The position numbers and the translations under genes are program-made. From NCBI GenBank assembly GCA_937625935.1, contig OW569390.1:124001-188000 (forward strand): a DNA stretch of 64,000 nt, given 5' to 3'. Of this stretch, positions 21,487 through 55,304 are shown one piece after another. This DNA comes from Tetramitus jugosus. Its lineage: Eukaryota > Protista > Heterolobosea. The notes below the pieces were generated by a model. The model saw nothing but the letters and a program-made list of their open reading frames with translations. It was not told where the DNA came from and did no database searches. Within the stretch, counting starts at the first letter, position 1. Every line of letters begins with the position of its first letter.

Positions 21487-21718
21487 TTTTTTTGTTTTAA
21501 TACAACCATTTCGGCTGCTCTGATTTTATTTTCTGATAATTTACACTGGATAACGCTCGAAGAGCGTTATCTCCTCTGTTACTTTTCATTTCTCACAATG
21601 ACGCTCGTAGAGCGTCATTGTTATGTGTCTTCCTTGTGGGAGATGAATAGGCGATGAAGGGTGTCGACGCACCTCCTCTTCACCCTGTTCACGAATGATT
21701 TTGCTTTCTTTTCCGCCA
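21487..21718 (-). mobile_element. family-B retrotransposon 3' fragment (ORF2 tail, 3' UTR, poly(A))
   Basis: encodes AEKKAKSFVNRVKRRCVDTLHRLF..stop (cf. AVKKARIYVNGVKRRCLTTLLHLF); same hairpins, AATAAA and ..GGTTGTATT-poly(A) end as 33246-33400. Confidence 0.9.
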
Positions 21719-22536
21719 TGAGCTATTGTGCAGGTCTCTTCGCTATCGGGTCTTTCCAGACTTTGTACATTCGTTTGATACAAGATCTTTTCATTGCATT
21801 TACCAATCTTTTCACTTTTGTTTCCCGCTTCTTGCGGCCATACACTACTATTTCCTTCATCAGTACCTCCTTCTGGTCCTCTTCTTTACCCATTAGTCCT
21901 GCCAGCAGCTCTTCCGATGTTCGACTGGGGATCCGAGGTAGCATTTTGCCATCATCGTACACCGCATTGTCAAACCAGAGATTGAGCTTGGCTGGTCTCA
22001 TAAACTCCAGTTTGTTCAATGAAACCTTGAATTCTTCCACTAGTTCGCTTCTTGCTCTTTTGGCTTCTTCACACTCCACCAAGAGGTGTAGTATCGTCTC
22101 CGGTTCGCTCTTGCAATGAGCACACATGGTCTCCATCAGTGGTTCATACAGGTCTCGTACTACAGTCTTTGTGTGCAGAGTGCCACTCCGGACTTGGTGA
22201 TAGAACCACAGCTCACCTCTTTCTAGACCGAAAGGGCACTTCAAGAACTCATTCCACTCCTTATCCTTCTGCAGTTCAGCTTCTAACTTCCAGTTTCCAT
22301 CTGATTTTACAGACTCAGCTCTTACTTGCGCAAAATGTTCCATCAAACCTTCTCTTACATTGGGATTGCTGAGAACACTGCCATCTGCCGTCACTTCTAC
22401 TGGCATCTTTCATTGCTCTCTGCTTCCTCCAACTTTCGTCACATGGTTTTCCAAGGAGCTCCATGTAGGCCTTTATCCTAGAGTACCTTGCAGGACCGAC
22501 TCCTTTCAGCTTGAACTTCTTCTTGGCCTCCTCCAG
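21719..22536 (-). mobile_element. 5'-truncated family-A retrotransposon (ORF2 C-terminus, frameshifted near 22410)
   Basis: translation closely matches ORF 36954-38180 (EWNEFLKCPFGLER.ELWFYHQVRSGTLHTKTV; CAHC..PETI.HLLV.C); homology stops about 44 bp upstream of tRNA-Ser. Confidence 0.92.
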
Positions 22537-22579
22537 TAATCAATTTTTGGGTAATGAGATAATTTCTTGAATACAACAA

Positions 22580-22661
22580 GCTCATTTGGCCGAGTGGTTA
22601 AGGCGGCGCACTGCTAATGCGTTGGGTTCATCCCGCGTAGGTTCGAATCCTACAGTGGGCG
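22580..22661 (+). tRNA. tRNA-Ser(GCT)
   Basis: cloverleaf GCTCATT/AGTGGGC; anticodon arm GCGCA-CTGCTAA-TGCGT; long variable arm; GTTCGAATC; T5 terminator follows. Confidence 0.96.
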
Positions 22662-31735: not shown

Positions 31736-32716
31736 CTAGGAGATGCTCACAAGAGTTGTTGAGCGTGACTTACAAAAGTCAACCACCTTTTCGATGAAAG
31801 CAGGATCTCGTCCACTCTTAAACCAAGTGAGTGAGCGAATATTCTTCAAATGGGCTAATGCATTCTCAGTGATCGTTTGTTGATCACAGCCACTCATTGT
31901 AAGTTTGTGAACACCAACCAAATAGGGAAATGCCTGATCCGTGATGTTCGTACACTCAATCATTTCAAGTGTGTGAATACCAGTCAGGTGAGTGAATGCC
32001 TTGTCTGTGATTTGAGGGCAATAATTCATACTTAGTTCCTGAATACCAGCTAAATGAGAGAAGGCTCGATCTGTAATTTGACCACAACGACTGATATTGA
32101 GCGTGTGGATGCCAGTCAAATGACGAAATGCATTGTCGGAAATGTTGTTACAAAACATTATATCAAGAGTGTGAATGCCCGTCAAGTAAGAGAGTGCATC
32201 GTCCGTGATTTGATAACAATGCTTCATATCTAACGTGTGAATGCCAGTCAAATGAGGAAACACCTTGTCTGTGATTTGCTTGCAAAAACTCATATTGAGT
32301 GTGTGAATACCAGTCAAGTGAGAAAAGACTTGATCTGTAATTTGCTCACAATCACTCATATCAAGTGTGTGAATGCCTTCCAAGTATTGGAAATGCCTAT
32401 CCCTGACATTGGGATGCCACCAAAAACCTACATTAAACAGTGTACCTTTGTTCAATTGAAACCAGGAGTCAATTTCTTGGTCATTCCAATGCGATTTTAG
32501 TGTTCTCTTCTTGTTGTACATGATGGATCGATTGTACTTAAATTGATTAATTCCCTTGCAAGTGTGACTCAATTGCATCCATTGACGAGTGTCACAAAAT
32601 TCGATAATGATGGTCCATACATCATGGCAAAGTGCAGAACAAATTTCAATTGTTTCACACTTAACATGTTCATTGTCTATTGCATTCTTGTTTTCTTCAG
32701 CTGCATGTTGCTTCAT
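31736..32716 (-). CDS. F-box/LRR protein
   Basis: LCHDVWTIIIEFC..LSHTCK F-box followed by 25-aa repeats LTGIHTLxMxxCxQITDxAFxH. Confidence 0.88.
   Translation of the reverse strand: MKQHAAEENKNAIDNEHVKCETIEICSALCHDVWTIIIEFCDTRQWMQLSHTCKGINQFKYNRSIMYNKKRTLKSHWNDQEIDSWFQLNKGTLFNVGFWWHPNVRDRHFQYLEGIHTLDMSDCEQITDQVFSHLTGIHTLNMSFCKQITDKVFPHLTGIHTLDMKHCYQITDDALSYLTGIHTLDIMFCNNISDNAFRHLTGIHTLNISRCGQITDRAFSHLAGIQELSMNYCPQITDKAFTHLTGIHTLEMIECTNITDQAFPYLVGVHKLTMSGCDQQTITENALAHLKNIRSLTWFKSGRDPAFIEKVVDFCKSRSTTLVSIS
31850..32400 (-). repeat. 75-bp-period coding tandem repeat (LRR), about 7 units
   Basis: recurrent gtgtgaat(a/g)ccagtca motif at about 75-bp spacing. Confidence 0.8.
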
Positions 32717-32954
32717 TTTTGTTTTTTTTGAGCGAAGAGATTGAGTATGCCCTTTTTTTGATTTGTTTTTCACTTAAAGTGAGTTGGCCACGAAATAGAT
32801 CAGGAGGTTCAAGTCCTCTGAAGGATAATTGGGATGCTTCTTTCCGATCAGTCACTCTTAACTGACAGCAAACCACCCAAGGCTTGAGAACTGGTCAGCA
32901 GCTGTTCAACGACCTGACTGAGAACATTTCTCGATGAATTCACGAATTTCATTT

Positions 32955-33230
32955 TCTGAGGGGTTGATGGAGGGTCGTGAGACATCTCCGCTTCTCACTG
33001 CTCACGAATGTTTAGCTTTCTTGGCAGCTACTGACTTCTTCATCCCGTTAAGCACCAGTCCCTCTGTTACCTGTTAGATGACATCTACCTAGATGCCCAT
33101 CATTCCTCCTTGAAGGTTTTCTTTGCTGGTTTTCTTGATTGATCTTCGCGACAGCTTGCCTTCCCTCAGTCGAAAATTGTCAACGAGAAACACCAATCTC
33201 GCGCCACACCTAGCTCCACTAACTCGTGCC
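32955..33230 (-). mobile_element. old decayed family-B-like retrotransposon fragment (ORF2 C-terminus)
   Basis: HELVELGVARD / DNFRLREGKLSRRSIKKTSKENLQGGMMGI*VDVI*QVTEGLV..KKAK / FVSSEKRRCLTTL aligns with the C-terminus of 33387-34571; contains stops and frameshifts. Confidence 0.8.
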
Positions 33231-33386
33231 ATCCGTTTGTGGCGCTTTTTTTTTTTTTTTTTTTTTTAATACAACCATTTCGGTTGCTCGCTTGCTCGCT
33301 TTATTGTCTTTTGTTTTCTTCGGCCATCGCTCGAAGAGCGATGACCCTTGGTCACCTGATTAATTCTCAATGACGCTCGCAGAGCG

Positions 33387-34571
33387 TCATTGTTGTTTCG
33401 CTTTTGTTGTGGTGAAGAGGTGAAGGAGAGTCGTGAGACATCTCCGTTTCACCCCATTCACATAAATTCTTGCTTTTTTTACGGCCACTGCTACTCTGAC
33501 TCCACTGGCAACCAAGCCATTGGTGATATCTTCGATGGCACTCGTTTCGATGCCCATCATACCTGTTAGATATTCTCTGCTAGTCCACCGCAGTGCTCTT
33601 TTTTCAATCTTTCCGTTCTTGAGTCTGACATTATCGAACCATATGTCGATACAACTGTCAGCTGACACTCCCAGGCTAATTAGTTCCTTACCCACTGTCA
33701 GTGCTAGACACCGTCTAGCATGGACAGACCTGGGACAACGTACCAAGCAGTGTAAGACACTCTCGGGTTCTTTTTTGCACCAGGAGCACATGATAGACGC
33801 ATTATGGGGGTTGTAAAGACCTCTAACAACTTCCTCTGTGTGGAGAGTTCCACTTCTCACTTGAAGTTGGAACCATTCTAATCTTCTATCCACACCATGA
33901 GGATATTTCAGGAAGGAAAAGTCAGCACCACTGTAATTTGCTGCCTTTTGCACCCACCATCTGTCACTTTCCTCCACTCGAATATTGCGCTCTTGATCAA
34001 ACAAGGATTGAAGGTGCTGTCTATTCTCTACCCTCAGTTCACCTTTATACAATGCAGGCTCGCCACACGACCGGAGACTTCGGCATGGACAATTACACTC
34101 TCTCATTTGAGAGACCAAGATACTGAGCAACTGGTGCCTCTGTGCACCCAGTTTACAGTTGGGATACACTTGCTTGAACTCTTTGAAGCACATAGGCTCA
34201 CCATCCACCACTAGTTGTTTACGACTAACTATACCCACAACATAAAGTTTCTTGAGCAAAGTGGTAGGAATGTATCTTGCGAGCCAACAGTCATCGCACT
34301 GTTTGGCCACGCTAGAGGTCATTTGAATGTTGTGACAGTGCATCCTGTCGGCACACCACTTATGGTAGGAGTGTTTCACGCACTCTAGTCTGTTCCTTGA
34401 CTGATACACATTCTCTTGTTGGAATGTTTGATGATGCTTGATATCCTCAAGCGTGTCAAGGAACAGTCTTCGTGCTTCTGTGTCCTTTTTACCATTGACC
34501 ATCGAGAACACGAACCAACCAGTCTGAGCAGCGATTGACTCCTCAATATCCTTGAGTCCGACTGATCCCAA
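33387..34571 (-). CDS. family-B ORF2 C-terminal part with CCHC zinc finger, out of frame with the RT part
   Basis: GSVGL (GGLGL-type motif); CSWCKKEPESVLHCLVRC. Confidence 0.85.
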   Translation of the reverse strand: MGSVGLKDIEESIAAQTGWFVFSMVNGKKDTEARRLFLDTLEDIKHHQTFQQENVYQSRNRLECVKHSYHKWCADRMHCHNIQMTSSVAKQCDDCWLARYIPTTLLKKLYVVGIVSRKQLVVDGEPMCFKEFKQVYPNCKLGAQRHQLLSILVSQMRECNCPCRSLRSCGEPALYKGELRVENRQHLQSLFDQERNIRVEESDRWWVQKAANYSGADFSFLKYPHGVDRRLEWFQLQVRSGTLHTEEVVRGLYNPHNASIMCSWCKKEPESVLHCLVRCPRSVHARRCLALTVGKELISLGVSADSCIDIWFDNVRLKNGKIEKRALRWTSREYLTGMMGIETSAIEDITNGLVASGVRVAVAVKKARIYVNGVKRRCLTTLLHLFTTTKAKQQ

Positions 34572-34572
34572 A

Positions 34573-36834
34573 TCACAACTGACGGAGATCCAGGAAAAGA
34601 TTCCCGACGGAGAACTTCACCAGCGATCTGCCCAACAAGTTGACTTTGTCAAGCCACTCTGCAGTCCAATCGGTGAACTCTGATGCATAGGTGAATATTG
34701 GATGTATGCATGTATTGACCACCCTACTCACTTGCCTCGCAGTCAGCCTCATCAGCCTGAGCCTTACGACAACTCTCTGTGCCTTTTGCCAAGCTTGCTC
34801 TCTCTGTCTATGTGAGCCTCCTCTAAGGTTAGTGTGCAGCCCTAGAGCACGGAAGACCTGTTTATTGTTTCTCGCTATCACTTGTATGCCATCAACAGTG
34901 ATGTCATAGTTTGATCCGTTCTCCTTCTTCCTCACATACAGTTCCAACTTGTCGGGGTGCATCGTCATTCGAAGCCACCCTAACACGGTAGACATTGCTT
35001 TGGCGGCTTTCTCAATGTCCTCCCTAGACTCAGCAAACAAATTGCAATCATCCACATACGCTGCGTTCCACAAGTTCTGGGTCATAGCACCAAATCCCTT
35101 CATTCGTTGACGCACATACAACAGTACCACTTGATGCACAAGGATGTAGGTAGTGGGAGACAATGAATCTCCCTGTCTTGTGCCTTTACCGATATGAAAT
35201 CTCCTTGAAAGTGATGAGGTTAGCACACGGGCATAGTTGTCGCGTACCATGCCACTAACAAGATTCACAATACCCTCGGGGAAGCCGAAGAACTTGTACA
35301 CCGCTTCGATGGCGTTGTGAGGAACCGAATCGAACGCCTTGGAGATGTCTGTCAGCAATAGAAAGAGCTGCTTGTCATGGCGATTTGCGTAGTCAATGAC
35401 ACCTCTGATCAGGGAGAGTTTCTCTCTGATATCCCTAAACCTCCTCCCACCTCCTTGGACATTTGTAAACAAACCTCCTTCTTCAGCCGCTTTGGAGATT
35501 CGCTGATTCAACAGCTTCGTGTAGAGTTTTGACAATGAACTCAGTAGGCAGATGGGCCGGTAGTTTTCTGGTAGAGTGACATCCCCCTTTTTGTAAGCAG
35601 GAATGATCACACATTCCTTCCACGCCTTGGGAAAATTGCCTGTCAATGTGATGTTGTTGAAGAACCCACAGAGAGTCTCTGCCAGCTCCCACCTAAAATC
35701 TCTCTTATTTGTGCGAGGGAGTTTAATCATCTCGTTGTGCATACCGTCAGCTCCCGGGCATTTTCTGTTCCTCAGCCATCTTATTGCTTCGGACACCTCT
35801 TCAACCTTGAATGGTTGGATGGCTTCTCTAATCTTGTGTTTGTCGCCATGACTTTCCATCAATGAGAGGAAACCCATGCTTGCTGCTTCTGACTTAAACG
35901 CCTTTTCAAAGTAGTCTGCAGCAACTTCACCCACAGTATGCGGATCCGTATATTGCATCCCATTTTTAGTAACCCTCGACAACCGTATACGGCAGCTTTT
36001 CTTTGCTGAAGCAGAAGAGAAAAACTTGGAAGGGTCACTAAACTCTGCCGTTCTTGAGACCCACTCCCATTTCCTGTATTTCTGTGAAGCCTTCTGGGCT
36101 CTAATCCTATGGAGTGCATCATTGACGCACTTGAGGGAGTCTAAAACTCTATCCACTCTCGATTCTCCACTGTCAGTAGTAACAACAATTTTTTCTAGCT
36201 TAGGACACCACACACGTCGATGCATGTACTCCATCAACATACTTCTGTGATGGAGCAATCTTCTGACAGCTCTGCACCGATTCCATTCTCTCGTAGTCTT
36301 ATTGTTCAGGAAAACTTCTGCTTGATTTAGTATAGTCCTCGTGATAATATTACATTGGGTATCAACATCCCGAATGTTTAGAACTCCCTCTCTTTCCAAT
36401 TCATCAACCACCTTTTTGGCATATTCTGTCCATCTAGAATCTTGTTTGTTCTTAGGGAAACGATATGATGCACGCTCACACGAGGTCCTGAAGTGCCTCG
36501 ACGTTGTTATTGACAACAATGTGGGCACGTGGTCACTGCCTACCCCGTTCTTTGTGTACATACTAATCTTCTCTATACTATCAAGTGCAGCTTTGTTGCA
36601 CCACACAGTGTCAATGCGCGACGAGGAACCTTTTCTGTAAAATGTGTGGAACCTTTCGACTCCAAGCTGCTCGTTCACATCAAATAGGTTATTTTCTGTT
36701 AATGCTTCCAACAATGGGCCAGTGTTGCTATCTATCCTTAGTGCTGACCTATCGGATGCCAGTATGACCGCGTTGTGGTCTCCTCCCAACACAAACTGAC
36801 CTACCAGAGAGAATTTGCTGATTGTTTGCTTCAA
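34573..36834 (-). CDS. family-B ORF2, partial APE endonuclease plus reverse transcriptase
   Basis: GGDHNA, HTFYR..SRID, SDH; KCPGADG, YRPICLL, DISKAFDSV, GTRQGDSLSP, AYVDD. Confidence 0.95.
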   Translation of the reverse strand: MKQTISKFSLVGQFVLGGDHNAVILASDRSALRIDSNTGPLLEALTENNLFDVNEQLGVERFHTFYRKGSSSRIDTVWCNKAALDSIEKISMYTKNGVGSDHVPTLLSITTSRHFRTSCERASYRFPKNKQDSRWTEYAKKVVDELEREGVLNIRDVDTQCNIITRTILNQAEVFLNNKTTREWNRCRAVRRLLHHRSMLMEYMHRRVWCPKLEKIVVTTDSGESRVDRVLDSLKCVNDALHRIRAQKASQKYRKWEWVSRTAEFSDPSKFFSSASAKKSCRIRLSRVTKNGMQYTDPHTVGEVAADYFEKAFKSEAASMGFLSLMESHGDKHKIREAIQPFKVEEVSEAIRWLRNRKCPGADGMHNEMIKLPRTNKRDFRWELAETLCGFFNNITLTGNFPKAWKECVIIPAYKKGDVTLPENYRPICLLSSLSKLYTKLLNQRISKAAEEGGLFTNVQGGGRRFRDIREKLSLIRGVIDYANRHDKQLFLLLTDISKAFDSVPHNAIEAVYKFFGFPEGIVNLVSGMVRDNYARVLTSSLSRRFHIGKGTRQGDSLSPTTYILVHQVVLLYVRQRMKGFGAMTQNLWNAAYVDDCNLFAESREDIEKAAKAMSTVLGWLRMTMHPDKLELYVRKKENGSNYDITVDGIQVIARNNKQVFRALGLHTNLRGGSHRQREQAWQKAQRVVVRLRLMRLTARQVSRVVNTCIHPIFTYASEFTDWTAEWLDKVNLLGRSLVKFSVGNLFLDLRQL

Positions 36835-36953
36835 GTATCCGTTTGTGGCGCTTTTCGGCTAATTTTTTTTTTTTTTTCCATACAACATTTGTTGCCCCTT
36901 TATTCTATCCACTACAGTGAGACGTGGTGTCGCTCAGAACCGCAGGTTCTGAG

Positions 36954-38180
36954 CTATTGTTCACATCTCTTCGCTACTGAGTCTCTCCAGACTTTATGTA
37001 ACCGTTTGATGCAAGACCTCTTCATTGCATTCACCAGCCTTTTAACTTTTGATTCCCTCTTCTTGCGACCGTGCACAACCAGCTCCTTCATCAACACATC
37101 CTTCTGGTCATCCTCCTTTCCCATTAACCCTGCTAAGATCTCTTCAGTGGAACGACTTGGGCTTAGTGGTACCAATTTCCCGTCATCGTAAACCACATCA
37201 TCGAACCATATCTTTAACTTGGCTGGCCTCATAAACTCCAGCTTGTCCAATTTGGCCTTGAATTCCTCAACCAGTTCCTTTCTTGCCCTTTTGGCTTCAT
37301 CACATTGCACTAGTAGGTGGGTGATAGTCTCTGGGGCGCTCCCGCAGTGAGCACACATGATCTCTATCATCGGCTCATACAAATCACGCAGTACAGTCTT
37401 TGTGTGGAGCGTACCACTTCTGACTTGGTGGTAAAACCACAGTTCATTTCTTTCTAGGCCGAATGGGCACTTGAGGAATTCATTCCACTCACTTTCTTTC
37501 TGGAATTCAGCCTCCAACATCCATTCAGGTTCAGATTCAATCGACTTTGCCCTCATCTGCACGAAATGCTCCTCTAGACCTTCTCTGACATTTGTGTTGC
37601 TCAACGCTTTATCACCTATCAACACTTCCAGAGCGTCATTCGTTGCTCTCCGCTCCTTCCATCTCTTTTCGCATGGCTTGCCAAGAATTTCCAGGTAAGC
37701 CCTTATCCTTGAGTATCTTGCTGGGCCGATGCCCTTCAACGTGAACTTCCTTTTTGCTTCCTCTAACGACATCACCATTATCCCATCATCATCGAAGAGT
37801 TGGGAGTTTTTGGTGATGCCACTTTGAATGAGTAGTTTTGCGTCTCCCGTAGGGAGATGCCACCCTATACTACATTTCCCACACTCATGCTCTCCTACGG
37901 GACCTACACGAACCTTCGAACCATGTAGGAGTTTGGCACACCACGTCAGGTAAGAGTGCTTGGTCTCACAAAGACGATTGTTGGATTGAAATATGCTCGA
38001 CCGAACGAGCGTTTGCGATTGCTTGACATCATCAAGCGTATCCAACAGAAGTGTTCGTGCTTCCGTGTCTCTCTTACCTTGTAGCATCCCCACGACAAAG
38101 GCAGAGATCTTTGCCGTCAGACTCTCTTTGAATTCATTGAGTCCAATGCCACCATTGTCCCTCTCCACTGACAGCAGCAA
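36954..38180 (-). CDS. family-A ORF2 C-terminal part with zinc finger (-1 frame relative to the RT part)
   Basis: DNGGIGL motif; CAHCGSAPETITHLLVQC. Confidence 0.88.
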   Translation of the reverse strand: MLLSVERDNGGIGLNEFKESLTAKISAFVVGMLQGKRDTEARTLLLDTLDDVKQSQTLVRSSIFQSNNRLCETKHSYLTWCAKLLHGSKVRVGPVGEHECGKCSIGWHLPTGDAKLLIQSGITKNSQLFDDDGIMVMSLEEAKRKFTLKGIGPARYSRIRAYLEILGKPCEKRWKERRATNDALEVLIGDKALSNTNVREGLEEHFVQMRAKSIESEPEWMLEAEFQKESEWNEFLKCPFGLERNELWFYHQVRSGTLHTKTVLRDLYEPMIEIMCAHCGSAPETITHLLVQCDEAKRARKELVEEFKAKLDKLEFMRPAKLKIWFDDVVYDDGKLVPLSPSRSTEEILAGLMGKEDDQKDVLMKELVVHGRKKRESKVKRLVNAMKRSCIKRLHKVWRDSVAKRCEQ

Positions 38181-40792
38181 AGAGGTAACCTTTTCATGGC
38201 ACTCGATCCATGTTTCACTGCCTTGCGTCCAATCCCCTCAATTTCGTTTAGCCACTTCTTTGGCCAATGGGTGAACTCTGAAGCAAACAAGAATACAGGA
38301 TGGACGCATGTGTTCACTATTCTCGCTACCTGACTTGGCCCCAACTTCAGCATCCTCAACCGATTCAGGATTCTCAGTACCTTTTGCTTTGCTTGTTTCT
38401 TTTGGGCCTCTGTGTCCCCATTAAGATTTGTAAAGAGCCCAAGCGCTCTAAAGCCTGTGTGTTTGTCCTTTGCAGTAATCACCTTACTAGCCACTCTGAT
38501 CGTCACAGGATCTTCACCCACTTTCCTTGCGAAGAACTCCAACTTGTCAGGGTGCATACTCAGACCAACCCACTTGAGCGCCCTGTACATATCATTAGCC
38601 GTTGACTGGATGTCCTGGAGATCATCACTGAAAAGGTTGCAGTCATCAACGTAAGCCACGTTCCAGATTCTCTGGCTCATGGCTTGGTATCCGCTTGCTC
38701 TTTGCTTTACATAAAGCAACACTAACTGATGAACTATCACATAAGTCGTGGGAGACAAGGAATCCCCTTGCCTCGTGCCTCTGTTGATGTCAATCGACCG
38801 TGATGCGAGTTGGGTTCCTATTGTGGCCACATTCGATTCCAACATGTTCCTGATGAGCGTGATGATACCCTCTGGGAAGTTGAAAAACCGGTAGGCAGCA
38901 GTGACTGCATTGTGTGGTACACTGTCGAATGCCTTCGAGATGTCGGTGAGCAGAAGATACAACTGCTTATCACTTCTATTTGCGTGATCAATCACTCCTC
39001 TGATGATGGACAGCTTTTCTCTGATGTCACGCATTTTACGACCTCCACCCTGCGTGTTGTAGAATACACTCATTTTCTCAGCAGCAGCTGACACTCTTTG
39101 GTTCAGCAGCCGAGTGAATACCTTTGAGAGACCACTGAGCAGGCATATAGGGCGAAAGTTCCCTATCACCATAGGGCAGCCCTTCTTGTACGCCGGAACT
39201 ATAACACATCTCTTCCATTCACCCGGGAATTCCCCGGTCTCTAGTACTCTGTTGAAGAACATCATCAGCACCTCTGCAAACTCAACTCTATAATCTCTTT
39301 CCTTGGTGTGCCTCAATTTGAGCATTTCATTGAATATCTTGTCAACTCCCGGTGCTTTACCGTTTCGCAGCCACTTTAAGGACTGCAGTACCTCCTCCAC
39401 CTTGAACGGGGGAAAAATATCCTCCATACTCTGAGTCCTGCATCTCATCTCGTCTAGGAACGTCATGTCTGCAAATTCTTGCTCAAACACCTCCTCAAAG
39501 TAATCAGCAGCATGCTCAGCTACCTTATCCGGGGCAGTTATCACCGTTTCTCCACTCTTATAACTCTTGAACCTTAGTCTCAGTGCCTTCTTACCTGTGG
39601 CAGCATTGAAGAAAAGTCGGGGGTCCACGAATTCTGAAGTTCTGACTTTGTACAGCCACCTGGAAAACCTCTTGTTAGCCCTTCGGGCTCTTTCAGCTTG
39701 TACAAGCCCCTCTACAATCTTCAGTGATGCCAAAACACCTCTCAGAGTACAGTCCTCCTTGTATGCCTTGCAAACCCTCATGAGTTTCGGTGAACCGGTG
39801 TCATGGGAAGACAGCCGCTCCACTAAAATCGTTCTATCCTTCAGCCAACGTCTAACTCTGCGGTTGTCAATTCCTCTAGCAACTGGTTTACACTTCGGAA
39901 ACCTCTTCGCACTTTCCCTTAAGATCACAGTGATCCGGTCACATTGTTCATCAACATCCAGTTCCGCCATGTTGGTTTTATCTAGCCCTTCAACCACCTC
40001 TTTTGAGTACTCTATCCACATCTTGCTTTCCCTCTTTGGGAACTTGGGCCTTTCTTCCGTGGACCCTCTTTCCTCCACCTTTGTCCACCATATCTTTACC
40101 ATCGTAGGTATGTGATCGCTCCTTACCCCATTGGTTGTGTACTTCTCCACATCTCTAACAATGTCAGTGGCTGGTGAATTGCACCAGATTGAGTCGATGC
40201 GAGAAGAAAACTCGCCTCTAAAGAACGTGTGAAAATGGGGTGTACCTGTAACTGTATTAACATCGCTCAGTTGAAGTCCTTCCACCATTGCCTTAAAATG
40301 GGCACTATTGTCATCTAACCTTCCAGAAGTCCTCTCAGTATTGTTTATCACTGTATTGTGGTCCCCACCAAACAATAGTTTCCCTCTGCATGAGAGCTCT
40401 CTCAATGTTTCATTGATCATCACATAGTGATGTCCTCCTTCTGTTCTTTTGTGAGGTCCGTAATGATTGACTAGGGTTACTCGCAGATCTCCGCATGCAA
40501 TCTCTACAGCCAACAATCTTTGGTTAGTCACCAGTGTTCTGTACTCTTGAATGCTCTCTCTTCTTATTATCGTCATTATTCTGTCATCTGTGTTGGTGTG
40601 TATCAACATACACCCAGCATACTCCAGCTGCTTTTCGAAAGCCGCTTTGAACTTTTCACTCTTGCAACTCGCCTCTTGCAGCATCAGAACATCAATCCTT
40701 GGGATGATCGCCTCCATCATGGCAACAACATCGTTTCGTTTCCCTCCTAACCCTCTGATGTTGTACCAAACGACATTGAGTGTCGTACTCAT
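38117..40792 (-). CDS. family-A ORF2: complete APE endonuclease plus reverse transcriptase
   Basis: WYNIRGL, LMLQEA, NHYGP, GGDHN, SRID, SDH; KAPGVD, FRPICLL, DISKAFDSV, GTRQGDSLSP, AYVDD. Confidence 0.97.
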   Translation of the reverse strand: MSTTLNVVWYNIRGLGGKRNDVVAMMEAIIPRIDVLMLQEASCKSEKFKAAFEKQLEYAGCMLIHTNTDDRIMTIIRRESIQEYRTLVTNQRLLAVEIACGDLRVTLVNHYGPHKRTEGGHHYVMINETLRELSCRGKLLFGGDHNTVINNTERTSGRLDDNSAHFKAMVEGLQLSDVNTVTGTPHFHTFFRGEFSSRIDSIWCNSPATDIVRDVEKYTTNGVRSDHIPTMVKIWWTKVEERGSTEERPKFPKRESKMWIEYSKEVVEGLDKTNMAELDVDEQCDRITVILRESAKRFPKCKPVARGIDNRRVRRWLKDRTILVERLSSHDTGSPKLMRVCKAYKEDCTLRGVLASLKIVEGLVQAERARRANKRFSRWLYKVRTSEFVDPRLFFNAATGKKALRLRFKSYKSGETVITAPDKVAEHAADYFEEVFEQEFADMTFLDEMRCRTQSMEDIFPPFKVEEVLQSLKWLRNGKAPGVDKIFNEMLKLRHTKERDYRVEFAEVLMMFFNRVLETGEFPGEWKRCVIVPAYKKGCPMVIGNFRPICLLSGLSKVFTRLLNQRVSAAAEKMSVFYNTQGGGRKMRDIREKLSIIRGVIDHANRSDKQLYLLLTDISKAFDSVPHNAVTAAYRFFNFPEGIITLIRNMLESNVATIGTQLASRSIDINRGTRQGDSLSPTTYVIVHQLVLLYVKQRASGYQAMSQRIWNVAYVDDCNLFSDDLQDIQSTANDMYRALKWVGLSMHPDKLEFFARKVGEDPVTIRVASKVITAKDKHTGFRALGLFTNLNGDTEAQKKQAKQKVLRILNRLRMLKLGPSQVARIVNTCVHPVFLFASEFTHWPKKWLNEIEGIGRKAVKHGSSAMKRLPLCCCQWRGTMVALDSMNSKRV

Positions 40793-41795
40793 AGTTCGCT
40801 TTGTTCGTGCTCTTGTGGAACAACACTCTCTTGAGTACTGTTCACTCGAATGGTTCCATTAGGGGAATTTGTCATAATTATCTTCCTTTGTACATCTTCA
40901 TCGTCTACTTCCCTGGCATCGCGCTTCTTTCCTCTGTTGCTTACAAAATCATCCATTCTCCTCTGACCTTTATCAATCATTAGTTTCCCTCTGTTTTTTA
41001 TTTGGACCACAGGTGTGTTCACCAAATCATCCTCCATCGTTTGCACTGTATTCATTGGTTCCTCCAGTTCATTCCTAGGTGTAGTAGCTTTTTCTTGCAT
41101 GGTGCTTTTGTTCGCTCCATCCTGCTTACTCGCCCTAAGTCTCATCTTCATCATTTCCGACTTGAGAATTCGAATTTCTTCCACACTCCTCCTGTAATCA
41201 TCTAGCATCTTGTTCATGTCTTCTTGAAGCTGTGCTACATTTCTCTTCAATACGTCCATTGGTTCGAGTGTTTTGTGTACAAATTTCCTTGTCTTGGTGT
41301 TGCCCATGGGTGTCTTTTCGAGCAATGCATTCGCATAACTCGGGCCTTTGGTGGATACAATGGCGGAGTTCCCTCTTAATTCTACTCTTTGAACATTGTC
41401 CCGACCAGCCCAAGTTTCAATATCTTCCTTGCTGATCTTCCCTGCTCCGGTAATTACTACGTCATGTGTAGCTCTCATTCTCCCATTGACGCTTGCCTTC
41501 GAATCCTTCAACACTTTTGTGCAGTTGAACACTGAATGAATTCCCAAACTTTGTCATCTCTGACAATTATCCACGCCTTGTAGCTTTCACCTCTCCTAAC
41601 AACTTGTACCCTCTCAACCCACTCCGAGCAGCTAGCAACCAGTTTATTCACTATTGCTTCTGGAGTAACATTGCTGCACCTCCCAGTGACGACTACTTCG
41701 TCCCTCTTCGTAGCTGCTTCCTTGCTCATCTTTGTCCATACAACATATTGACTTCTGCGGATCATTACCGCCTGTACTGACGGTCCTTGTGACAT
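40789..41795 (-). CDS. family-A ORF1 (two RRM-like modules plus coiled coil), split by a frameshift at about 41508-41547
   Basis: ORFs 41508-41795 and 40789-41547 overlap; DEVVVTG..ERVQV..AWII and HDVVITG..QRVEL..SAIV repeats; stop overlaps the ORF2 start as ATGA. Confidence 0.75.
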
Positions 41796-41858
41796 GTGTT
41801 CGCGTTTTTTTTTTGCGCTTTTCGGCTAAATAATGCGATTTTTCAAAATTAACAACAA

Positions 41859-41930
41859 GGGATTGTGGTCTAGGGGTATGATTCTTGCTTAGGGTGCAAG
41901 AGGTCCCGGGTTCGATTCCCGGCAATCCCC
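41859..41930 (+). tRNA. tRNA-Pro(AGG)
   Basis: GGGATTG/CAATCCC acceptor; CTTGC-TTAGGGT-GCAAG anticodon arm; CCGGG-TTCGATT-CCCGG T arm; T4 follows. Confidence 0.97.
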
Positions 41931-42223
41931 ACTTTTGCTTTTTGTCGCGCCAACATCCAACAGGTCAAAAAAGGAGCTCCACGAATTTTTCGGGAGAAGT
42001 GGGCACAAAAAGAGCGTTGCAACAACAAAAAAACAACAAGCACCAAATCCACCAACTTTGCCTCTCACCATACTCTCATTCCCAGTTGTTGTCGTGTTCC
42101 TTCTTCCATTGTCCCATTCTGAGAGAAAATTGAGTGCATTTTGTTCACAAACCAACAATAGTACTAGTAATAGACAGAGCTCAGTTTGTCGTCAATTGAC
42201 TATTTATCACGAGACAGACCACC

Positions 42224-45200
42224 ATGTTGTCACTGAACCGATTAGTGACCGTTTTTGACAGTTCACCTCACTTTCCCTCCAAAAATTCCAATCAACATTC
42301 CTCCGCTGCTGCTACAGCAGGGGGTAGTATCAATAGCGGAGGGGCACGAGTCATGTCCATGAGTGATCAATTACAACAACAGCAGCAACAACAAGTGATT
42401 GGATATGAACGAGATCGTTGTAGCTTTCTAGTCAATTCATGCAGCAGAAACAGTAACCAAATTGAGTTGATTCAATTGGTTCCTCACCAAAAACAACAAG
42501 TCATTATGACTACAACAATGAACAATCATCATCCACTCTATCAATCAACAACAACAAGTGGAAAACAGCAACAACAACAACAACAGCCGAGCATTAACAA
42601 CAACAAACGTCATAGTAGTAATCGAGAAGAAATCAATCATCACAGTGAAGAGAGTCATCATGATGATGAAAATGATGATGATGATGACATTCGTGTCATG
42701 ACACCTAGTGAAGGCACTGATGCTCCTCCTCAACCAACAATTACAGTTTCTCAACCAAGAAGTATATCATCCAACAAGCAACAACAACAACAACAAAATG
42801 ATTCAACCTTACAACAACAACAACAACCATTACAGAGTACAGTAGTGACTGTTCGATCATTCAAACGATCACAGAGTATCACACTGTGTCAAATGGATCC
42901 TTCATTGCACTGTGTCAGTGCATCCATCAACACGAGTAGTGCTCACATTGTTGCCATGACTACTCTGAGGTACACTATTGTCAATGCCACGAGCAATCCG
43001 GTGAGTAGTGGACTGTATGAAACATTTTTGATACAATTGTCGGATTATACGAATCATTTTGATCAGAAACAACCCATATTGTTCAAACGGTCCAACCACT
43101 TTCAAAGGATACAGTTCGTCAGTGAAAATTCCTTTTTATTTTTTTGTGTCAATGAACCGCGAAATAATATTGGAGGTGGTAATAGTGGTAGTAATAGTAG
43201 TGGTGGTGGTAATGATCATTCAAATGTGAGTACTGCCTCGTTTCGAATCGAACTCTACAAATTCCAGTTGAATAAGAAGACGGGTCAGATGATGACAGCT
43301 CCGACACTCTATATGCTCATTTGTGATTCCTGTATGTGGTTTCAGTGGGATCCTGACATGTCCTATTTGTACTATATGGCATCGAATAAGCGAAAGGATG
43401 ATGGATCAACTGCATCGTCGTCATCTTTGTCATCATCGTCATCGTCGTCACACAATAACGCAACGCTGTATGTTTCGTGTTGGGCGTTGACCGAGAGCGT
43501 AAAGGTGGATCCAGTTTACAGGTACAATGTGCCCATTAAAGAGTCTGATTGCTATCACAATCATGACAAGTACAGAAAGAAGAGAGCAAGTGCAGATTTT
43601 TCGAATCATGTCTCACATCAGAGAATGCTCATGAAGGGATGTTGTCCTGGAATGGACTTTACGATAGTGTCTTTGGACAATAATGTCGATTGTTTGTGTA
43701 AGCAGGAAATTCATGACGTAGCACCTAATCGTAGATACATTATGATTCAAATATTTATTTTAACTCATCAACAAACAATCAAGTTTGCGATTCCAATTGG
43801 AAGACATGACGCTCAGAAATTTGCATTCTTTGGACGACAAAAGAATGTGCTTATTGCCTATGTTCCCGGCATCTTTTTGAAAATGATAACGATAAACAGG
43901 AACGAACAACCTGCCAATTTGGTAACATTATCTGCTGCCTCTAACGACTCTTCGCAATCCATCTCGAATCTATCCAGTGTCTGTAAGAGATCCATGGAGA
44001 GTGAAGCACAACTTATTCCCATTTTTTCCCGATTTAAGGCAGACTCATATGTGCTAAACACAACGAATGGCGAGATCTATTCCTATTTGATTAACAGTCC
44101 AGCTCTGCTGCACCTACTCAAAGCGAACTATATGAAAAATAATAACATTGAGAGATTGTTACCAATGTTGAATTGGTCGATCATGCATGAGTCCCCACTG
44201 AGGAAACACATTGATAACTCTCTACAACTTGACTTTTCTTTCCCAGAAATGATTATTTATAGTCTATATCAGTATAACAAGGAGTATTCACGTCAAAGAC
44301 TACAAAGTACCTATTTATTCAAAGAGTTTATATTGGCGACATCTTTTATGATCGCGTCTGACATTTATAAGATGGAGGTGGAATTTTTGACATGCATTCC
44401 CAACTCTATCATTGCTGCCCATCCATATCACAAGGTTGGTTCTGCTCCTCCCATTAATCTGCTCGCGGAAGTCGGCCGTAGTCCCACATGGAATCAGGAT
44501 GAACGAAGTCTACCTGCTTCTGCAAATCAAACACCCATATCAGATATGCTGCTGAAAAATCCATACGAAACAGAAGACAGTTTATCTCCTAGTTCAGCCC
44601 CTGCTATAGTGAAGACTCTGTGGCAGAAATTATCCAATAAGCCTGAGCAGGAACACGTATCGGAGCCGCAGTCGACGATACCAAGATCTCCCAGCGAAAT
44701 GGCATTTGATAAGTTTATTAAGACCAAACAGGAACATATTGAATCAGATTATATTGCCCTTTGTTGGCGATTTGCCTTCTATCAATCGCTTCGAGGTTGT
44801 ATCTCGAATGCAAAGATTGGTAAGGCTTGGGCTGCTAAAAAATGGGCAGCTGGTTATACCTTTATCGTCGCTGGTCAGGTTTCTAGATTGTTCCAAATCA
44901 TACAAAGTTTGTCAATCCGAGCTATTCAGTCACTGGATGTATCGAATGAAAATTATGGTCAAGCAACGCTCGAAGAATGCAAGTGGTATTTCCACCTGCT
45001 AGAATTATTCTATCGGACACTCGAGGAATTATCAGTGCCTGTTGCCCCACATTTTCACTTTGAATTCTCCTTGATTGCATTCCATGTTTTACCACGAAGA
45101 ACATTCATGCAATATGTGAGAAATAAGGTGATTTTTATTACGCAAGCATTTGTTGACTATATTCACTCGACTGAGTTGTGCAGAGATGCATCGTTTTACA

Positions 45201-52170: not shown

Positions 52171-52514
52171 AATGTTGATGTATTGTCAGTGGTTTCTTTG
52201 TATTCACACTCTGATTGAAAAGACTCAAGGAAAGCTTTTTTCGGTTGACCAGATCTCTCATCTGGATATTTCAGGAATTATTTTCAGTAAACAAGAAAAA
52301 CAAATACGTGTTGCCTTGAATAAATAACAAAACAAACACATCCGATCCATCCTTGGCAGTTTTTCTGGACAAGAATACATCGTAAAATGTCGAGTTTTGG
52401 GAAGAGGGAAAGGTCCAGTATCTAGCACGCAACTCACCTGATCACAATTCAAGGCTCGCAATTGAATCACTCCAGGTCTTCTTGGAACCACGCGTACAGC
52501 TTCTGGGCGTGCAG

Positions 52515-52656
52515 TTTTTTTTGTTTTTTTTAATACAACCATTGCGGTTGCTCACTTTATTATCAATACATTTTCATCAGCCATCGCTCATTGAGCGATG
52601 GTTCTTGGTCTTCTGATTAATTCCCAATGACGCTCGCAGAGCGTCATTGCTGTTGT
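52515..52656 (-). mobile_element. 142-bp family-B 3'-end-only insertion
   Basis: poly(A), AATAAA and the same hairpins as 33268-33392; TSD CTTCTGGGCGT(G/T)CAG at 52500-52514 and 52657-52671 (14/15 identical). Confidence 0.93.
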
Positions 52657-52710
52657 CTTCTGGGCGTTCAGATGAGCGGGAATATCATCCTACAGTTATA
52701 CAAATAAGAA

Positions 52711-52792
52711 GCATGCGTGGCCGAGTGGTCTAAGGCGTCCGACTCAAGTTCGGATATCTCCGGATGCGTGAGTTCAAATCTCACCGCATGCA
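52711..52792 (+). tRNA. tRNA-Leu(CAA), copy 1
   Basis: GCATGCG/CGCATGC acceptor; TCCGA-CTCAAGT-TCGGA anticodon arm; variable arm; GTTCAAATC. Confidence 0.96.
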
Positions 52793-52875
52793 CAGTTTTG
52801 CCGCTTTTGTCATTTGAAAAAAGGAAAGATCGAACAGAAGAGGTTTTTGAAAGCAGATGCCCTTTATTAATGTTA

Positions 52876-54826: not shown

Positions 54827-54943
54827 TTCGAATGAATGATAATTTTTATGATGTAAATCTTCATGTATCTTAAAAATTTATTTAACTGTAAAGTTATATT
54901 TTTCCGACGTGGGACTTTTTAGAACAAAATCTTTAAATAAGAA

Positions 54944-55025
54944 GCATGCGTGGCCGAGTGGTCTAAGGCGTCCGACTCAAGTTCGGATATCTCCGGATGC
55001 GTGAGTTCAAATCTCACCGCATGCA
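54944..55025 (+). tRNA. tRNA-Leu(CAA), copy 2, no upstream insertion
   Basis: identical to 52711-52792. Confidence 0.96.
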
Positions 55026-55304
55026 CAGTTTTACATTTCTTGGGCAGCTCAAGAACAACATCAGAGGAAGATTTGACAGGAGCCACTTGTGACAGGTTAT
55101 TTGGCTTACTGCCTGTTCAATTAATTGTCGATTTATGCGTGAAAACGATTACTTTTTAATGTTGGAAAAGGAACTAATACAAGGGTTGTTTTTGTTTTGG
55201 GGGACTTTGTGTTTGACGTCACATCATCGATTGTTGGACTGTCAATCACAAAGCAGCAGTGTGATATAGAGAGATTGGAGTGGAGTGAAGTGCGAAAACC
55301 AAAT

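Follow-up and report, generated by a model that had tools for sequence, protein, structure and literature searches.

How does a retrotransposon that inserts next to a gene measure its distance from that gene? This question is raised by a stack of insertions upstream of a tRNA-Pro gene, where two families were described as using insertion sites about one DNA helical turn apart. Across the genome, related LINE families land just before tRNA and 5S genes at two spots 11 bases apart, which provides a natural test of distance measurement. The same question applies to TRE5-type elements and their distance from tRNA genes, but in Dictyostelium ORF2 could not be manipulated (PMC3159450). A tunable, base-precise safe-harbour insertion geometry is also of interest for retrotransposon-based gene insertion.

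Insertions in the 64-kb window

Positions refer to the window, the whole 64-kb stretch of DNA that was analysed, which is part of a 26.35-Mb, 56-contig assembly; negative values are bp upstream of the first base of the gene. The insertion stack and its target occupy 32957-41930. The target gene, tRNA-Pro(AGG), lies at 41859-41930 (+ strand) and is preceded by 29 bp of host spacer (41830-41858, +), in which a pyrimidine-A step at -6/-5 is the putative transcription start. Adjacent to this spacer is a full-length, 4.95-kb family-A element (36863-41814, - strand), recognised by an RT domain match, its ORF translations and a target site duplication (TSD) on both sides. It encodes ORF1 (41795-40789) and ORF2 (40792-36954; APE endonuclease, RT and zinc finger), with a poly(A) tail at the 3' end and an A10 run at the 5' end. 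Its frameshifts near 41529 and 38186 are copy-specific, as other copies have one extra base there. The family-B element further upstream is 5'-truncated (33246-36836, -; RVT_1 E 1.8e-27 and translations). It comprises a poly(A) tail (33246-33266), the 3' UTR and the part of ORF2 that runs from the middle of the endonuclease to the zinc finger, RT included, with a single frame change near 34600.

The preliminary description had placed the family-A TSD at -44 to -30 and the family-B TSD at -55 to -41. Both placements were reproduced, and each TSD has exactly two occurrences, all on the + strand: 36848-36862 and 41815-41829 for A, and 33231-33245 and 36837-36851 for B. The 15-bp B duplication, measured with A removed, is followed by an ambiguous T4 that could extend it to -37. 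B inserted earlier than A because the right TSD of B and the left TSD of A overlap by 4 bp. The stack consists of three elements, as 32957-33227 (-) is the remnant of an older insertion of a third related LINE family, which has lost its tail and which the preliminary description had missed. This remnant of an ORF2 C-terminus matches pieces in L080, L015 and L039 (81-85%, blastn). Its homology ends at 33227, which puts its 5' junction at -59/-58 on the rebuilt tRNA-Pro flank. Contigs of four sequencing runs, aligned to 36780-42300, revealed the family in runs from groundwater and from culture, whereas an empty tRNA-Pro allele was not among them. An F-box/LRR gene with five 66-nt repeats (31736-32773) adjoins the stack.

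Two further insertions in the window had been cited for the same distances. The B copy at tRNA-Leu was confirmed at -54 to -40: a short element (52515-52656, -; 52500-52671 with TSDs) is flanked by 15-bp TSDs with one mismatch (52500-52514 and 52657-52671) upstream of tRNA-Leu(CAA) at 52711. It belongs to a separate B subfamily, B25, 80-86% identical to the B element of the stack. The tRNA-Leu(CAA) genes at 52702-52799 and 54935-55032, which flank a KIF-binding-protein gene, are identical including 9 upstream bases, and only the first carries an insertion. The supposed A copy at tRNA-Ser stood only in part. Its homology does end at 22537, i.e., -43 instead of about -44 relative to tRNA-Ser(GCT) at 22580, but the copy (21487-22537, -) is a chimera rather than family A proper and has no TSD. 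A B19-type 3' end (21487-21718) is joined to a body of subfamily A10, which is 98% identical to L010 and 75% to the A element of the stack. This copy is weak evidence for the A insertion window. Chimeras of a B-type 3' end and an A-type body are recurrent (also L050 and L016; L012), with template switching or deletion between stacked copies as candidate explanations.

Full-length copies (41805-41814 in the window; N5/N26 5' ends) open with a run of A, which a short GC-rich unit often divides in two. The 5' A run is only ~19 nt from the ORF1 ATG. Transcription may come from flanking DNA, since no internal promoter is obvious. The 3' UTRs of all families (e.g., 33267-33390) have in common a terminal motif ahead of the poly(A) and short hairpins whose core is conserved, and the same 3' terminus occurs in L094, L095, L100 and L101 from other samples. 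Elsewhere in the genome, L053 has a B25 copy upstream of tRNA-Lys whose left flank resembles the 5' end of that same gene, and an isolated 18S rRNA fragment (L085:221-735, contig 21) adjoins a truncated 5S gene.

Two narrow, lineage-dependent insertion windows upstream of tRNA and 5S genes

The tail motif shared by these elements has 285 matches genome-wide, compared to 2 for a control pattern. The 3-kb surroundings of 92 tails were merged into loci and searched for tRNA and 5S genes. A script called the TSDs, nested cases were resolved by eye and some TSD edges were placed manually; the gene-proximal TSD end was taken as the priming nick, under target-primed reverse transcription. This yielded 53 TSD-flanked events out of at least 285 ends, a sample biased to short copies and contigs 1-29; about 10 near-gene copies with no callable TSD were left out (e.g., L008, L047, L053, L084, L092, L030, L080).

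At tRNA genes, the gene-proximal TSD ends form a near mode at -30.3±1.0 (n=18) and a far mode at -41.3±1.2 (n=23), with -38 to -34 empty among directly measured values. The distinct modes predicted near -30 and -40 thus appeared in the 53 copies outside the window, and the nick spacing, anticipated as 10-11 bp, was 11.0±0.35 bp. 5S genes are targets as well; the genome has 118 dispersed ones, at which the modes are -25.2±0.75 (n=6) and -35.8±1.0 (n=4), 10.6±0.6 bp apart. A two-component fit was preferred over a single component (BIC 202 vs 259). Outliers were L037 (-72), which adjoins a long A tract, and L034 (-49), a 5S copy with an 8-nt deletion. Near and far insertions at the same locus differ by 9-12 bp (the tRNA-Pro stack, L020, L018, L090, L043, L068/69, L009/41). 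The modal TSD length is 15 bp. Elements upstream of tRNA genes lie in the opposite orientation to the gene. On contigs 1-13, a tail lies within 6 kb upstream in the same orientation at 16 of 39 5S genes (random expectation, 1.3) and at 7 of the 20 listed tRNA genes. The opposite orientation was found at 1 and 0, respectively, and further arrangements at 5S genes were nearly absent.

Families were set by 3'-end clustering and a tree of ORF2 C-termini, which gave clades A, C, D, E and B; a second tree omitted two chimeric rows of the first (the tRNA-Ser copy of the window and L016/L050). The tail dinucleotide alone was rejected as a family label, as TA/AA span B, C, D, E and N5. All 12 A copies are near and all 13 B copies far (Fisher p=2e-7). 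D and E are also far, whereas C lies at -32/-31 where directly measured. With the ORF1-only element N26 added to A, the counts become 18/18 near against 23/23 far for B, D and E together (p=5e-12). It is practically certain that the insertion windows are lineage-specific. Family means are -29.7 (A), -31.5 (C), -40.8 (B) and -42 (D), so that families spread over 1-3 bp inside each mode. A step of 9-10 bp separates C from its sister group B/D/E, and one of 12 separates A from D. On the ORF2 tree, near and far require one change (support 88/85, not starred). Two C copies, positioned only by relative offset, blur the otherwise clean split at about -37 to -39: L083 is just 4 bp (plus T ambiguity) from a B nick, and L041 is 8-9 bp upstream of an A nick.

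The family specificity proposed at the outset holds for the ORF2-coding lineages but not for the non-autonomous N5, which occurs in both insertion windows. N5 and N26 are high-copy retroelements of 1.3-1.4 kb (L058:1492-2887 and L003:1483-2809; about 100 genome-wide matches) that encode ORF1 only. Many copies are intact, with ORFs of 390-415 aa predicted to contain tandem RRMs (matches at E 1e-6) and a coiled coil. Relatives at 57-79% identity occur in other samples. N26 has a CC tail, as in A, and all six copies are near, at the exact position of A. N5 has a TA tail, as in B/C/D/E, and is near in four copies and far in six. Its near values of -31/-32 match C and not A (p=4e-4). N5 copies are 95-100% identical in ORF1 across both insertion windows, whereas N5 and N26 ORF1s share 50-55%, and either shares 24-38% with autonomous ORF1s. 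An autonomous parent was found for neither N5 nor N26; for N5, L100 was considered and rejected, as it is a stack of insertions.

The shift of the insertion windows between gene classes points to a common reference. Both lie closer at 5S genes, by 4.5 and 5.5 bp. tRNA flanks have a pyrimidine at -6 in 70% and A at -5 in 69%, and 5S genes have T at -1; judged from these bases, the putative transcription starts are -5 (tRNA) and +1 (5S). As the ~5-bp shift matches a start at -5, the insertion windows would lie at ~TSS-25 and ~TSS-36 in both classes. Between per-gene variation of the start site and nick position, no relation could be drawn. It is highly probable that the tether is registered to the start site on the Pol III complex. 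Of the endonuclease proposed earlier to be tethered on one helix face of TFIIIB-bound DNA, the Pol III-registered tether is supported by 5S targeting and the constant distance to the putative start, whereas TFIIIB and the helix face are parts that we still infer.

Proposed mechanism and its alternatives

These elements would represent a radiation of APE-RT non-LTR retrotransposons, with N5 and N26 as dependents, that use target-primed reverse transcription to insert upstream of Pol III genes in head-to-head orientation. The integration complex would dock, probably via ORF1 as in TRE5-A, on the initiation complex that fixes the Pol III start (TFIIIB, or the part of TFIIIC that places it). How far ORF2 reaches would then decide where the non-template strand is nicked for priming: ~TSS-25 in A, TSS-27 in C and TSS-36 in B, D and E. 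The second nick would lie ~15 bp further upstream. A single change on the branch to B+D+E would have shifted the nick by about one helical turn, probably since protein-covered DNA is open on one face only. A weak preference for G five bases before the nick and A just after it may fine-tune the cut, and an ORF1-only element would land in the insertion window of the ORF2 that reads its 3' tail. As a whole, we give this explanation an even chance. In yeast, TSS-25 lies inside the TBP-bound segment of TFIIIB, which sits uneasily with nicking once TFIIIB is fully assembled.

The strongest alternative keeps the same tether but assumes a continuous, ORF2-specific reach, so that the 11-bp gap just reflects how far the nick moved in one evolutionary shift, free of helical constraint. 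The single near/far switch on the tree, the 1-3 bp offsets between family means within each mode and the two C copies near -37 to -39 agree with it. The one-turn step size rests on one evolutionary event because the tree has only that switch. Continuous reach does not readily explain why the offset is 10.6-11.0 bp at two gene classes, why directly measured values leave the gap empty, or why one N5 copy (L068) has a 25-bp TSD (15+10). Furthermore, A tracts recur in phase upstream of 5S genes, at about -34, -25 and -15, and the two nicks coincide with edges of the tracts at -34 and -25. The second nick of A (-44, other strand) is ~4 bp from the first nick of B, as across one minor groove, a relation that is partly arithmetic. 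On balance, we consider continuous reach possible but rather unlikely, and place true helical quantisation of the insertion windows at an even chance or slightly better. A fuller version, which we put forward only tentatively, is that the ORF2 ruler steps only in whole helical turns on one open face of TFIIIB-covered DNA, that sister lineages thereby split the niche into two registers, and that an ORF1-only parasite takes its register from the ORF2 recruited.

Which protein measures the distance is suggested by N5. As N5 uses both insertion windows with one ORF1, the ORF2 recruited via the tail would set the distance, if ORF1 acts in cis; the ORF1 of TRE5-A does act in cis, and its in vitro partners include TFIIIB subunits (PMC3159450). 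In the alternative, ORF1 is the ruler: its docking site on the Pol III complex differs by family and ORF2 cuts at a fixed distance. TRE5-A targeting has been attributed to the ORF1-TFIIIB contact (PMC3159450, PMC5911963), and ORF1s are strongly divergent between the families studied here. However, this alternative stands only if N5 RNA borrows a helper ORF1 in trans. The insertion window also tracks tail type and not ORF1 kinship, and TRE5-A and TRE5-B have very similar preferences although their ORF1s are only 25% identical (PMC3159450). We therefore regard an ORF1 ruler as improbable and, from the distribution of copies, ORF2 as the probable ruler, with helper ORF2s presumably serving N5. 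Near and far ORF2s do not differ in the length of their endonuclease-to-RT linker (254, 258, 252 aa). Near and far ORF2 variants that act at the same targets, together with N5 in both insertion windows, mean that domain swaps can locate the ruler.

The insertion windows could also be directed by sequence, with the phased A tracts and the G five bases before the nick forming two cut sites between which endonuclease preference differs by family. A is enriched just after the nick (54/99 vs 32), and G occurs five bases before it at 14 of 26 tRNA sites against 5.2 expected, a weak local preference. The phased motif is conserved upstream of 5S genes. TSD sequences are otherwise unrelated, though, no strong motif marks -41 in tRNA flanks, and the same weak motif is common to both families. 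Where the 5' end of an older near-window copy occupies the far site, far-window copies also nick this element DNA at the unchanged coordinate (L072, L043, L042, L009/41). Because of this, position and not target sequence chooses the insertion window, which largely refutes sequence as the main cause and makes this explanation very improbable. Apart from insertion, the 118 near-identical dispersed 5S genes share the upstream motif (-35 to -12; e.g., L004, L016, L023, L026, L030, L056, L062, L079, L080, L093), with A tracts ~10 bp apart and invariant G -30 and A -26. It is a candidate external Pol III promoter element.

An artefact of small numbers or TSD calling is hardly credible: although poly(T)-adjacent edges are ambiguous in 19 of the 53 copies and curation was partly manual, the 31 unambiguous copies give the same two modes, the T-independent distal edges split alike (-42 to -47 near, -53 to -57 far), and the 5' junctions of five contigs from other samples agree (-43 for A type, L099; -45 for N26, L104; -54/-55 for N5 type, L100, L102, L103).

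Comparison with known Pol III-targeting elements

The closest counterparts are TRE5-A of Dictyostelium discoideum and its dependent TRE5-A.2. TRE5-A likewise has ORF1, an ORF2 with APE, RT and zinc finger, a poly(A) tail and head-to-head insertion upstream of tRNA genes. ORF1-only dependents of the TRE5-A.2 type, mobilised in trans, are the counterpart of N5/N26. In TRE5, ORF1 binds TFIIIB and targeting requires the B box. TRE5-A has its 5' junction 47±3 bp from tRNA genes but 37-41 bp from 5S genes, a shift attributed to TFIIIB placement (PMC5391098). The near insertion window reported here (A, C, N26 and near N5), with junctions at 42-47 (tRNA) and 35-40 (5S), matches this geometry. The far insertion window (B, D, E; 53-57 and 50-51) is outside the TRE5-A range, and TRE5-B is reported to be very similar to TRE5-A in preference (PMC3159450). 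New here are the near/far split with its measured bimodality, the register relative to the start site and the argument from N5 and N26.

Several features separate our elements from TRE5. Their 5' UTR is ~19 nt (5' end 41814, ORF1 ATG 41795) and lacks the 200-bp A-module promoter, and self-blast of the window element revealed no duplicated UTR module of the TRE5-A A/B/C type. ORF1 is predicted to have tandem RRMs and a coiled coil, which we list as a further difference. TRE5 hosts are dictyostelids, whereas the present host, whose DNA was found in soil and groundwater runs, is apparently heterolobosean (the best named match of one window protein is Naegleria lovaniensis, 35%). In ORF2, RVT_1 is strong, while Exo_endo_phos and zf-RVT fall below the cut-off with the catalytic motifs NxxG, QE, GDHN, RID and SDH present. 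The RT scores higher against R2 structures than against 8c8j. Among 30 ORF2 matches looked up, none had a dictyostelid name; named matches were arthropod and fish elements (23-30% identity), and many were unnamed. The elements thus appear to work like TRE5-A, but we do not file them as TRE5, given their module structure and host.

Reviews describe non-LTR Pol III targeting of this kind in dictyostelids only, with one pooled TRE5 window (PMC5006619, PMC5911963), and the literature searched, which covered few subscription papers, held no heterolobosean or Naegleria precedent. The present elements extend position-specific LINE targeting beyond dictyostelids. L1-type LINEs resemble them in the N-terminal APE, ~15-bp TSD, poly(A) tail, 5' truncation and RRM/coiled-coil ORF1, but differ in that our elements are position-specific and have no T-rich nick consensus. 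The non-LTR elements NLTR-B of Polysphondylium pallidum and NLTR-A of D. purpureum insert upstream of tRNA genes at 39-64 and 2-6 bp, respectively (PMC5006619). These are RNase H-bearing, few and in different species, whereas here the ORF2 C-terminal parts gave no Pfam match to an RNase H after the RT, and two insertion windows coexist at the same genes. The LTR elements Ty3, which is tethered by TFIIIB (PMC5911963), and DGLT-A also keep a constant position with respect to the Pol III start. They differ in that an integrase inserts them, at the start site or close to it, and in having a single insertion window instead of two.
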